Below, one piece after another: positions 7,457 through 52,198 of a stretch of 64,000 nt of DNA (position 1 is its first letter; each line of letters starts with the position of its first letter). The notes under the pieces were generated by a model. It worked only from the letters and a program-made list of their open reading frames with translations, was not told where the DNA came from and searched no databases. A program made the translations under genes and the position numbers. Origin of the DNA: Magallana gigas (taxonomy: Eukaryota); the NCBI RefSeq assembly GCF_963853765.1, contig NC_088858.1, positions 34,286,001-34,350,000 of the forward strand, in the 5' to 3' direction.

Positions 7457-10400
7457 TCAGCAGGTCGGAATGAGACAGAATTCCCACCATTGGTTCGGGT
7501 CTGTTGTATAGCACCACTGATCAAAACCAAAAGTAGGATTTCTACAGTAGTTTTCCTGGAAATAAAACAAAAGCCATGCACGTGTAAATAAATTACATTG
7601 TGGAAATTAAACTAGCAGTTCGGTCGTGATAAACCTGCGATCAATGTATAATTCTTTTTCTTGAAAAAGATGAGATGATTTTTTGATATAATTCTAAAAC
7701 TCAGATCTAAGATCAATGAATTTTAAAAATGTTCATTTAAGTGCAACATATGCTAGGACATTGTATGAAAAGGATCATTGACCACGAATTCACATGTATA
7801 CTCAAAATTGAAATTTTCACCATACTCATGAAATATGATTCCAACAAATATTAATGAAACCGTAGAAAATCTTATTTGATTTTAAGGTGGTATGGGACAT
7901 CTGTCGATATTAATGTTGATTAAAGGAAATTCATAATTGAAATACTTAACGGTTAGGAATTTTTCAATTTTTACAGAATTTAACCAAAAATACGTTTTAA
8001 TTTTTTTTGGAAATGTAAGAACTTTAAAATCTCCAGCGGGATTAAAACTCATGATGTACAGATCCGTAGAGGAACCTTTAACTCACTGCGCTACGTTAAT
8101 TGTTTGTTTGTTTGGTTTTTTTTTTTGGAGGGGGGGGGTTGTAAAATGATACTTGATTTCAAAGCTTATTCCAGTAAATAATACGTCACAACATGGAGGT
8201 GTCCCATACCACCTTAAGGTAACTCTAACATGGGTAACTTGTTACCATCCGGCCTCCTTAAAGCCAAAATCACGGTTAAAAAAACAACGGGAATAAACTG
8301 ATTGACACAAATTGAATTATTGAACACCTGATATATTTCATAGATGATATCCATAGTTCCGCCAGACTCCATGAATTTAAATAAAACAGGGACTTTCTAG
8401 TGGTGCCAGATCAACCAGATCACCTGCCAATCGACTCAATCAAGTCATTGTTACTTTCCTTTGAACAATATTATTTAATCTATTGATTTTCAAATTAAAA
8501 ACATTAAGCAATTACCAGACATTGCTTACCAACTGAATCGTTTGTAAAACACTTTTCATTTTTTATTGACAAGTTCAATATATGACCACATATATATGAC
8601 CACATGATCATGAATACCTACGTATAGAGAAATCAACGTAAATCACTGAGCCCAGAATGTAATTCTAAACACTTTTCTAAAGACTTTTAATCAGAAATTA
8701 CTGATAAACATGAGCTGATACACTACAGTCTGAAACTACGGATCGGCGTATGATTAAAAGATCTCAGTAGAATATGCTATCTTACATGACAATACTTAGA
8801 CAAACATATTTACATTAGAATTCGTTTATAAGAAAGGAAATCTCGTTATGAAAACTTTCTGGTATAAATTAACGGACCTTGATGCAAGGAATCATTCATT
8901 CATTAACAATACCAGTAATTCGTTCAGAAAAATTCCCAAGTTCGAGCACTTCATCCATGTATAGGTAATACAGTGTTTTAAAGCAACATGCAGTCCATAC
9001 CGGATAGTTTGGGTAGTCGTGGCTATGCGGTGTCTGTGAGTCCCAGCGCTGACACGTTTTACCGGAAATTGTCACGTTTTTGCTTCCCAAGTAATTCCAT
9101 CCATTGGGATCGGTCGACTCAATGCATACTACAATGAGATAAGTGTACGAAAACACATAATTACTTCTCTTTAACTTTTTTTGCTTTAATACTTCGACAG
9201 AAAACGCTTTATTGATTAAAACCATTTTTAACATTTACAAACTCTAGCGTAACGAAATTCTTGAAAATCTACCATCTGACTTATAAAGTAGTAAGTGCAC
9301 ATTACCATAATAGCCGTGCACTCGCTACAAGCAAGGAACATGCATTTAATTTCTCACTTTGAAGCAGATTAAAAGTTACTATATGATAAACTTGTAGCAG
9401 GATAAATTCTTAGGTTGCTCGATCGCGGGATTACTGCATGTGAGAATACCTATATTATATAAATAGTGCCTGTTTTGGAGGGTAACAGTTGAAATTGACA
9501 CCCCGAGAAAACCATTGTCAACCGACGCGAAGCGGAGGTTGACAATGGTTTTCGAGGGGTGTCAATTTCAACTGTTATCCTCCAAAACAACCACTATTTA
9601 TTTTGTTATACTGAATGTCTTAATTTTTAAGAAAATTTTATTGCTTGTATATAGGAATAACGTGAATTCTACAGCGAACCGTACGCGCATAATTTTCGCG
9701 CATGTAACAATTTGTAATTTTACCCGTTGCTAAGTGCGTTGCTAACGCTGAGGGTAATAGAACGGATTATGAACTGCGTCTTAACCAATCAGATTTCAGT
9801 ATTTAACATGAAAGTATAACAATATATAAATAGTGCCTGTTTGGGAGGGTAACAGTTGAAATTGACACCCCGGGGAAACTATTGTCAACCGACGCGAAGC
9901 GAAGGTTGACAATGGTTTTCGAGGGGTATCAATTTCAACTGTTACCCTCCCAAACAGGCACTATTTATTTTATTATACTGAATATCTTAATTTTAGAGAA
10001 TATTTTTACTGCTTTTATATAAAAATGACGTGAATTCGTACGCACGAACCGTATGCGCATAATTTACGCGCATGTAACAATTCGTTGTGTTACCCGTTGC
10101 TAAGTGTGTTGCTAACGCAGAGGGTAATAGAACGGATTATCAACTGCGTCTAAACCAATCAGATTTCAGTATTTAACATTAAAGTATAATAATAAAATTT
10201 GTCTGCTTGATCCATTGGTTTCAAAGTTTTATTTCGAAATTCGACTGCATGGTTAAGATGTTATCATGTTTCAAATTAACCACAGTATCCCTGATGAAAT
10301 CAAGCATCGCCATTTCAATAAAATCTATGGTGACATGTACATCTTTGTCGGTTTACGCATTTCAAAACTATGCTGCTATCTTTTCAACGAAACAAACGAA

Positions 10401-50847: not shown

Positions 50848-52198
50848 ATGTAACAATAAATAAAAAGTCTGCAAGCTCACGTGCAATCGCACAAGACGTC
50901 TTGCTCGATGAATGTCGAATACACATCTTTCCTATTGGACATGTCACGTTGTTACACCTCTCTGCTTGTACATCGGTATCCTAGAAATGTTTGAAAGGGA
51001 CCTAGACACGATTTGAGCTCAAATTTTTCAAAATTTATTTGTCATTTTAATTATCTAGAATGGTCAATTTGGAGGTTTTTTTTTTTACAAAGGTAAGAGT
51101 TCTTTGTATCTTAAACAAAAATCGAGTCTTCTTTTTGTTAATATATTTGTAGTACATTATGTACTGCTGAAGGTTTAAATCTATTTCTGCCTTCTTTTGC
51201 TGATCAAATTATTTATGAACACATTTAACTAGTTTATTTTGTCAAAGAAATGGTAGTTTCTGAATTTTACATTATTTTAATAAATATAAGACTCGAACTT
51301 TGTTTACATAACAACATTCAAAATCACAAGTAAACCATTTTATAAATAATTTTTTTTAGAATTCATCTTTAATCGTGATTATGTCCCTTTAAGATTTGGA
51401 ATGTGTATTTAAATTCATTAAACACTAGAAATACCAAATATTCATGGATACAATGCTTTCAAAAGTCATCATATGACATACACAATAGATAAAAGATTTG
51501 TTAGTCTATATTTTCCAATACGAACAAATACATGTAATTTTATCTACAATATAAATGATATTTTTGAGAAGTAGAGAACTACCTTTATTTCTAAACAGGG
51601 TGCTTTTTTGATAAGCTAACTTTGCAACGTTTTTCTCAAAAAGTGTTTTACAATGCACATATTTTATCAAAGTTAATCTGTGTGGTATAGTTTAATATCA
51701 AAGTTTCATTAAAGAACAAGGCAGAGTAGTATCTAAAACGTTTTTAATATAGATTCATATCATTTTTTATGCTTGACAATGAAAAATTCAATTGTAAAAC
51801 ATCAGGAACATTGTGTTTGTTGTACAGCGTGCAATCTTTTAAGGGAAATTTAAAGTTATACATATCGTCATGTCTAAGATATATTTCATTTAAGGCAATT
51901 AAAAACATTTCGAACGTACCTTTGAGAAAGATATTCTAGGAATATAAATAAAATCCTCCGTTTCGCTGGTATTTACCGTGACTTGATCAGTTTCGGTTTC
52001 ATGTTGAGAATTCAGCTCACACAACAGTCGATTTCTGCTGAAATTGACCGAGAGACATTCAGCATAAGCAATACACATTTTCAAGCACTGCTTGTGTCCT
52101 GTTGGACTCAAAGATTTGAAATTAAAACCAATGAGTCTTCTTCCTGACTCAACGTTATTAATCACGAATAAAAGTAAGAGCATTGTAAAATTGATCAT
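49252..52198 (-). CDS. Paralog C (more divergent): secreted PAN/Apple-FOLN-Sushi-Kringle protein, 5 exons, 270 aa
   Basis: Exons 52198-51920, 50980-50881, 50615-50412, 50202-50075, 49353-49252; GT-AG, same phases, 813 nt. Exon 2 [23 protein letters not shown] is follistatin-N/EGF-like. Kringle ends [33 protein letters not shown]. Confidence 0.88.
50800..50845. repeat. (GA)n microsatellite in intron 2 of paralog C
   Basis: Perfect AG run. Confidence 0.95.
50996..51388. mobile_element. Kolobok-like MITE in intron 1 of paralog C
   Basis: tgaa|agggacctagacacgattt...aatcgtgattatgtccct|ttaa, imperfect TIRs. Confidence 0.6.

Follow-up and report, generated by a model that had tools for sequence, protein, structure and literature searches.

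Tandem PAN-Sushi-kringle genes of the oyster Magallana gigas vary most, among the youngest copies, at segments that form the ligand pocket in vertebrate kringles

What might small secreted-type proteins that carry a kringle and no protease do in an oyster, and which part of them differs most between neighbouring gene copies? The question is raised by a 64-kb window of Magallana gigas DNA (contig NC_088858.1, positions 34,286,001 to 34,350,000; coordinates below are those of the window unless another source is named), in which an earlier note had described three intact five-exon genes as a tandem family encoding PAN, FOLN, Sushi and kringle modules. We rebuilt the minus-strand genes from stop-free segments and flanking splice sites and obtained three complete five-exon genes, here called A (13206-7457), B (42431-37675) and C (52198-49252), whose exon sizes, outer ends (7457 and 52198) and shared intron phases agree exactly with that description. 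The extent of the array had been underestimated, as a fourth intact copy, A0, begins ~1.5 kb past the low end of the window. At the level of sequence, the diversity of A0, A and B is extreme, and it is limited to those stretches which in vertebrate kringles make up the ligand pocket. To our knowledge, such pocket-focused hypervariability of a kringle is undescribed.

The gene models were examined at their borders and against database proteins and transcripts. All 12 introns of A, B and C have GT-AG borders, the intron phases are 0, 1, 1 and 0 in each gene, no internal stop occurs and the window contains no N stretches. The predicted proteins have 272 (A), 279 (B) and 270 (C) amino acids (aa), and the spliced A and C proteins are identical to the M. 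gigas RefSeq proteins XP_065944486.1 (P0115) and XP_011452171.3 (P0077), respectively. Two intron-free Logan contigs (933 and 989 nucleotides (nt)) hold whole coding sequences, one being an allele of C (L007) and the other an A-like copy (L008). Each aligns in five blocks that end at the modelled exon borders and stays colinear for 50-100 nt past the stop. Because the RefSeq identities of A and C and the intron-free contigs are joined by Pfam matches in the individual exons, the gene models stand far beyond chance. Queries were exons or the two RefSeq proteins, the joined models being used only for translation, alignment, the ratio of nonsynonymous to synonymous substitution rates (dN/dS) and local BLAST. 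A0 lies on the minus strand of the adjoining segment of the same contig (34276001-34286000, L001), with exons at 8515-8222, 7665-7566, 7046-6843, 5182-5049 and 3599-3501 of that segment, and encodes an intact protein of 276 aa.

A and B are tandem duplicates, as had been proposed: their introns and flanks are 73-94% identical. C is older, its similarity to A and B being limited to exons. A0 and A share ~88-90% identity over the whole gene and differ in the kringle pocket, where A0 reads PTSWRQP and RTEE. The difference is concentrated in exon 5, which encodes the second half of the kringle; here 19 of 99 bases differ between A and A0 (81% identity) against 22 of 580 in the flanks (Fisher p=4e-7), and the 300 nt on either side of the exon are 96-99% identical. 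All except one of these 19 differences fall into two patches totalling 33 nt. The first patch (7517-7537 in gene A) encodes the loop between CRN and WC (PTFGFDQ), which aligns to D55-A-D57-K-G-P of plasminogen kringle 4, and differs at 11 of 18 bases; the second (7478-7489) encodes kringle positions 71-74 (WWEF), aligned to R71-W72-E-Y74 of the same kringle. The divergence within the patches (55% of bases) is far above even the older divergence of the A and B introns.

The same localisation was seen in a wider set of sequences. Among eight close A-clade sequences, variable columns make up 13% of the PAN module as against 43% of kringle exon 5, and the variation is gathered in three segments: the residue pair that follows PHSH (positions 34-35), the CRN-WC loop (54-61) and positions 71-74. 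All three correspond in the alignment to the plasminogen kringle ligand pocket, and positions 34-35, 55-61 and 71-74 to the lysine-binding site, with roles assigned from established structural work on plasminogen kringles. The loop of the first patch shows four to seven residue states per column among the eight sequences. Ten different A-clade pocket loops were recovered (PTFGFDQ, PTSWRQP, PTRELWP, PDEVYWP, PDEVILP, PDEDSRP, PPGYLRP, PTWYLRP, ANEVDWP and ADEVYWP), three of them in spliced transcript contigs from different runs, and partial sharing of motifs among the variants (...YLRP, ...DEV..., WWE) indicates that both descent and recombination were involved. As a control, at least nine sequences of the chromosome-10 clade, at comparable sampling, all read PSNHNGT, and the clade I alleles all read PDQEPRP. 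We then compared the proportions of nonsynonymous (pN) and synonymous (pS) differences in six A-clade coding sequences. In the pocket codons pN was 0.43 and pS 0.33 (pN/pS 1.29), in the rest of the kringle 0.067 and 0.097 (0.69), and in PAN-Sushi 0.040 and 0.093 (0.43). Replacement change in the pocket (pN 0.43) thus outpaces silent change in the other parts of these genes (background pS 0.095) ~4.5-fold.

On balance we favour reading A, B, C and A0 as non-catalytic secreted proteins of a putative recognition or adaptor type, in which a constant PAN module would be combined with a variable kringle pocket. The more specific proposal, for which the chance seems close to even or slightly below it, is that each acts in body fluids or mucus as a bivalent protein, for recognition or as an adaptor, with a host partner bound through the conserved PAN and targets bound through the variable kringle. 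PAN, being constant, would hold a conserved partner such as a host glycan or a host receptor, and the kringle pocket would allow variable targets to be recognised in diversified ways, the likeliest of these targets being surface molecules of microbes or of other non-self origin, met in hemolymph or mucus. A putative role of this kind gains indirect support from the hypervariability of the pocket, which would be expected of a recognition molecule. A further step, possible and in our view rather doubtful, would make A0, A and B a germline-diversified recognition system, with the kringle pocket as the hypervariable element on a constant PAN-Sushi scaffold under diversifying selection against microbial or gamete targets. 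If this were true, the array would represent a novel type of variable recognition molecule among invertebrates, with a kringle pocket in the place that an Ig, lectin or fibrinogen domain would otherwise take.

Several points tell against these proposals. Within the patches of the pocket pS is elevated too (0.33) and the classical dN/dS excess is modest, so that patchy gene conversion, or old alleles spared homogenisation, could contribute to the pattern; moreover, the set of pocket codons was drawn partly after the variation had been seen. Gene A has neither the canonical D55/D57 pair nor R71, and binding of the lysine type cannot be assumed. B had no matching transcript or database protein in whole-protein, profile and exon-1 word searches, none of which used the joined B model as query; the closest matches were 75-81% identical, with one exception, a chimeric M. 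angulata model (P0116). Likewise, no matching transcript or identical protein was found for A0 in the collections searched. Finally, the full-length AlphaFold2 (AF2) model of the gene C protein is poor, with a mean predicted local distance difference test (pLDDT) score of 53.5, so the domain arrangement cannot be stated from it.

The raised pS, together with the unmatched B and A0, fits an account in which the young copies A0, A and B are redundant and drifting and the patches are a neutral gene-conversion mosaic amid homogenised sequence. Such an account would also accommodate the dN/dS of 0.70 between A and A0, which is not significantly below 1, the mosaic identity of A and B along the gene, and the chimeric or partial copies found elsewhere (P0116, P0117). 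We nevertheless consider it improbable. All four open reading frames (ORFs) are intact and retain every domain cysteine, the cysteine totals being even (16 in A, A0 and B, 18 in C). Pairwise dN/dS is 0.27 for A-C, 0.31 for B-C and 0.47 for A-B (p=0.001), significantly below 1 for A-B and A-C. The 55% divergence of the patches far exceeds that of the A and B introns, distinct pocket variants occur in spliced transcripts of different runs, and the patches coincide with the known ligand pocket of kringles. Across the genes as a whole selection is purifying, and it is strongest on PAN, the most constrained part (dN/dS 0.2-0.3).

Relaxed constraint on B was considered separately and is not favoured, given the A-B dN/dS of 0.47 and the absence of acceleration in B: relative to the outgroup C, nine unique residue changes were counted in B and nine in A. 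In a different comparison, that of gene C with L007, an allele or sister-species transcript (and with XP_052697830.1 of M. angulata), seven of 12 residue differences lie in the 33-codon exon of the cysteine hairpin and none in the kringle, a pattern opposite to that of the A clade.

To which known modules do the constant and variable parts belong? Exons and whole proteins were scanned with Pfam at the gathering cut-offs of PAN_1 (PF00024, 21.4 bits), Sushi (PF00084, 20.7 bits), Kringle (PF00051, 34.3 bits) and FOLN (PF09289, 21.1 bits). In the per-exon scan PAN_1, Sushi and Kringle were present in each of A, B and C; among 20 whole family proteins, PAN_1 and Kringle were found in all and Sushi in 19. 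The order along the protein is predicted signal peptide, PAN/apple, short cysteine hairpin, one Sushi, one shortened kringle and end, so that the PAN, Sushi and kringle modules, their order and the small, secreted type of the proteins are as the earlier note had them. The start codon, a predicted signal peptide and PAN are encoded by exon 1 (gene A, 12919-13206, 288 nt, followed by a GT donor; gene B, 42144-42431, 288 nt; gene C, 51920-52198, 279 nt), which scores 30.2 (A), 31.7 (B) and 33.9 (C) bits with PAN_1. Read by eye, the N-termini are hydrophobic, over ~21 aa in gene A, with small residues at -3/-1 (VKA/G, VES/G), and no other hydrophobic stretch follows.

Exon 2 (100 nt; 12267-12366 in A, 40924-41023 in B, 50881-50980 in C) encodes the short cysteine module. 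In gene C and in clade I it is a four-cysteine hairpin with the spacing C-x4-C-x2-G-x2-C-x9-C, which resembles that of FOLN and EGF modules. In A0, A, B and the genes on contig C10 the first and third cysteines have been lost together; gene A keeps two of the ancestral four within AG/GT exon borders and has no valid Pfam match, and the two-cysteine module of gene B likewise corresponds to no Pfam family. If the module is paired in the EGF-like manner (1-3/2-4), this double loss would remove one whole disulfide. The FOLN label given to this module was not upheld: of the single exons, only that of gene C gave a match, which covered 12 residues and stayed below threshold (14.9 bits, E=0.03), and among the whole proteins one of 20 matched, at E=0.33. 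A Lustrin_cystein match on the gene A exon-2 ORF was also rejected, as it extends into intron-encoded residues.

Exon 3 (204 nt; 11120-11323 in A, 40177-40380 in B, 50412-50615 in C) encodes the Sushi/CCP module, with four cysteines and a conserved tryptophan in the phase 1-1 exon of gene A and the pattern C...C...C..GxW...C. Its scores are 24.5 (A), 24.4 (B) and 30.4 (C) bits against the cut-off of 20.7, the long first loop limiting the fit to the C-terminal two thirds of the profile. To call it a complement module, as had been done, over-reads a single Sushi repeat.

The kringle is split between the last two exons. Exon 4 encodes its first half in gene A (9001-9128, 128 nt, covering positions 4-35 of the Kringle profile, with a cDNA contig block ending at its border), gene B (38913-39046, 134 nt) and gene C (50075-50202, 128 nt); in B, use of an alternative in-frame acceptor that lies 6 nt further downstream would shorten the exon to the 128 nt of gene A. 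Exon 5 encodes the second half and the stop in gene A (7457-7555, 99 nt, profile positions 46-79, 37.5 bits), gene B (37675-37788, 114 nt, 46.1 bits, pocket loop PTRELWP at 37750-37770) and gene C (49252-49353, 102 nt, 44.6 bits). The exon halves score 29-46 bits and the whole gene C protein 61.5 bits against the cut-off of 34.3, and six cysteines are present. Compared with plasminogen kringles, the module is short of seven residues where exons 4 and 5 meet (between positions 36 and 48). Its nearest solved relatives are plasminogen K2 (64-67 bits) and HGF K2 (E ~1e-16).

That the genes end right after the kringle, and that no protease follows, was borne out. In the family alignment, 20 of 20 full-length members terminate 0-1 residue past the last kringle cysteine; B alone has an extension, of five residues (EFIYK) before the stop. 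A cDNA-type contig is colinear to 7360 past the gene A stop and L007 to 49201 past that of gene C, and the transcripts of the chromosome-10 paralog have a 3' untranslated region of up to ~650 nt after the same kind of stop. As transcript contigs run through the stop, no protease exon follows, and trypsin-type motifs (GDSGG, TAAHC) were found in no frame of the window; a hidden downstream protease was accordingly rejected. An AATAAA signal lies ~110 nt downstream of gene C exon 5, and none occurs within 360 nt after the stops of A and B. Microsatellites of the (GA)n/(CT)n type stand at 7263-7322 and 37545-37580, ~135 nt and ~95 nt after the stops of A and B, respectively, and a third lies in intron 2 of gene C (50800-50845). 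A-type transcript contigs break exactly at the (CT)n repeat, which leaves the true 3' ends of A and B undefined.

The PAN fold consists of an alpha-helix packed on a curved antiparallel sheet, and the AF2 model of the gene A PAN module (pLDDT 95.6, from a 44-sequence alignment) was compared with solved structures by Foldseek. The top matches were all PAN/apple domains, with template-modelling (TM) scores of 0.64-0.72, probability 1.00 and E values of 4e-3 to 1e-1. Among the best were the galactose-binding PAN lectin SML-2 (TM 0.72), the factor XI apple domain, the plasminogen PAp domain (0.68), the HGF N domain (0.67) and MIC4. By sequence, PAN plus exon 2 matched no solved chain in the PDB even at E<=10. 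As modelled, the gene A PAN module has a generic PAN/apple fold, no nearer to the HGF N domain than to a galactose lectin of parasites. Sarcocystis SML-2, Toxoplasma MIC4 and the apple domains of factor XI and prekallikrein, which superpose on the model with root-mean-square deviations of 1.8-2.8 Å, are small disulfide-stabilised modules that bind sugars or proteins, as the oyster PAN may be, to judge by its predicted fold. Unlike them, the oyster PAN is only 11-20% identical in sequence and occurs once per protein, joined to Sushi and kringle; it has four rather than six cysteines and therefore no apple-type closing disulfide.

The earlier note had proposed an NK1-like ligand. In this explanation, the proteins would be HGF-NK1-like or plasminogen-related ligands whose PAN and kringle act as agonist or antagonist of a Met/Ron- or ROR-type receptor. 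Several likenesses recommend it. The NK1 and NK2 forms of HGF/SF are secreted, as is predicted of the oyster proteins, and join an N-terminal PAN fold to one or more kringles with no serine-protease domain, the oyster kringle is clearly homologous to those of HGF and plasminogen (nearest K2 in both), the PAN model reaches a TM score of 0.67 to HGF N, and some of the automatic database names are of the HGF or plasminogen type. However, PAN and kringle are separated in the oyster proteins by ~100 residues, the cysteine hairpin and Sushi, so that they are not of the NK1 type; PAN matches neither HGF nor plasminogen by sequence, its top folds being equally parasite lectins and apple domains; and the kringle carries the seven-residue deletion. 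In addition, NK1 and NK2 are splice isoforms of a protease-like gene, whereas the oyster genes stand alone and belong to a family probably confined to oysters, with rapid turnover of copies. A pocket that is hypervariable between near-identical copies would also be unusual for the ligand of one conserved receptor. Nor do the proteins qualify as plasminogen or plasminogen-related growth factors, since they end at the kringle, have no trypsin-like domain and show no such match of PAN. We therefore regard a ligand of this kind as quite improbable, and recognition or adaptor proteins remain the reading that we favour.

Could the kringle instead serve as a decoy for lysine-type ligands? A lysine-binding kringle such as plasminogen K1 or K4 has the anionic pair D55/D57, the cationic residues K35/R71 and the aromatic residues W62, F/Y64 and W72. 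Like the kringles of plasminogen, apolipoprotein(a) and angiostatin, the oyster kringle has six cysteines, and the positions at which it varies (34-35, 55-61, 71-74) coincide with the lysine-binding site. It differs in being single and shortened, in its lack of conserved D55/D57 and R71, and in standing in a protein with neither a PAp-type N-terminal peptide by sequence nor a protease. Gene A has T55, G57 and W71, gene C has R55 with D57, and A0 has T72; W62 is invariant in the family, and the acidic pair survives in a few alleles (P0103, D-E-D). As the canonical lysine-binding residues are not conserved, uniform binding to lysine-Sepharose is not expected. A role as decoy or regulator, comparable to angiostatin or apolipoprotein(a), would have the proteins compete with oyster kringle proteases or occupy microbial 'plasminogen receptors'. 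Oysters do have proteins that combine a kringle with trypsin (P0148) while the array proteins are without a protease, and some members keep acidic residues of the D55/D57 type and R71/W72, which would suit such a role; the variation of the lysine-binding residues across the array would not, and a cognate protease partner has no support. We judge this explanation unlikely.

We next consider how widely the family is distributed. The whole 564-Mb M. gigas assembly holds ~9 close copies of the PAN exon. The same contig carries further members at a distance of 0.33 Mb (33944001-33964000), where two intact-looking genes were found (L004, and L005, which is XP_011455830), and two more lie on contig C10. 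The second cluster also includes a frameshifted PAN-exon fragment with a leftover piece of Sushi (L004 9650-9897, L005 718-811). Searches with one protein and with a 20-sequence profile recovered relatives over the full length in no species but M. gigas, M. angulata, C. virginica, Saccostrea cucullata and Ostrea edulis; outside these five oyster species only the kringle matches. The word-index search was limited to candidates with shared 5-residue words and 0.55-1.75 times the query length, which makes absence outside oysters probable rather than proven. Judged by these matches, the full PAN-Sushi-kringle architecture is probably confined to true oysters. A maximum-likelihood tree resolved two clades. 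Clade I has orthologs in all five oyster species, and clade II, with the topology (C,(C10 genes,(B,(A,A0)))), contains only Magallana sequences and unnamed Logan contigs; by its place in this tree, the window array is a Magallana-specific expansion.

Lineage-specific expansion, with diversity localised to a binding pocket among recent paralogs and alleles, is also typical of gamete proteins of marine invertebrates. The array might accordingly encode fast-evolving reproductive proteins of gamete recognition, seminal fluid or egg coat, with the pocket providing sperm-egg specificity in a broadcast spawner. The chromosome-10 paralog, however, was assembled in 12 runs, its mRNA-type contigs being 1.1-1.5 kb long, an indication that its expression is broad or abundant, and a reproductive role seems to us an outside chance.

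Snail FREPs, amphioxus VCBPs and sea-urchin 185/333 proteins are diversified secreted families of invertebrate recognition. As an analogy only, the oyster array resembles them in lineage-specific tandem expansion of proteins of secreted type, and in combining a constant part with a hypervariable putative binding site. There is no homology, and the variable module of the oyster proteins is a kringle. The architecture itself is a new combination of known modules. Kringles have mostly been described from vertebrate proteins of clotting, fibrinolysis and growth-factor signalling, in which they serve for docking; the oyster lineage has a stand-alone PAN-Sushi-kringle protein of secreted type that has been tandemly multiplied and whose diversity is focused on the kringle pocket. 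If the diversity of the pocket is adaptive, these proteins of ~250 aa, simple and expressible, would make it possible to study the ways in which a kringle pocket can be retuned to many ligands, and they would be a candidate new recognition family in a farmed animal among which Vibrio and OsHV-1 cause heavy losses.

The genes and proteins are already present in RefSeq and UniProt under conflicting automatic names (uncharacterized, prothrombin, plasminogen, HGF activator-like, hyaluronan-binding protein 2-like), and the public names 'prothrombin', 'plasminogen' and 'HGF activator-like' mislead. In the literature searched, which excluded most subscription journals, no paper on the family or its accessions was found, and the papers on plasminogen or kringle in oysters are unrelated to it; the statement of the earlier note that this architecture has no functional description thus stands for that literature. 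Two database models, XP_052699357.1 of M. angulata (P0116, 338 aa) and K1PQG5 of the 2012 M. gigas annotation (P0117, 433 aa), fuse neighbouring copies, joining one or two extra B-like pairs of PAN and hairpin exons to an A-like gene. These fused models point to structural variation in the array, to incomplete copies or to read-through transcripts. The M. angulata locus (L020) has one copy only within 26 kb.

The duplicated unit in the window is far larger than the genes. When 1-6544 was compared with 15185-19887 and 28075-30427, positions 1-4043 matched 15185-19887 and positions 4253-6544 matched 28284-30427, at 78-94% identity. The second unit is broken by additional DNA (~8 kb, at 19.9-28.1 kb) and also by a long terminal repeat (LTR) retrotransposon at 31453-35834 on the minus strand, between A and B and ~1.8 kb downstream of the B stop. 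The terminal repeats of this element (31453-31593 and 35694-35834) are 141 bp long and 100% identical, and its open frames of 854 aa (aspartyl protease, reverse transcriptase, RNase H) and 475 aa (integrase) have the order of the Ty3/gypsy type; it looks like a young insertion. A further open frame, of 982 aa, lies on the minus strand at 56503-59451.

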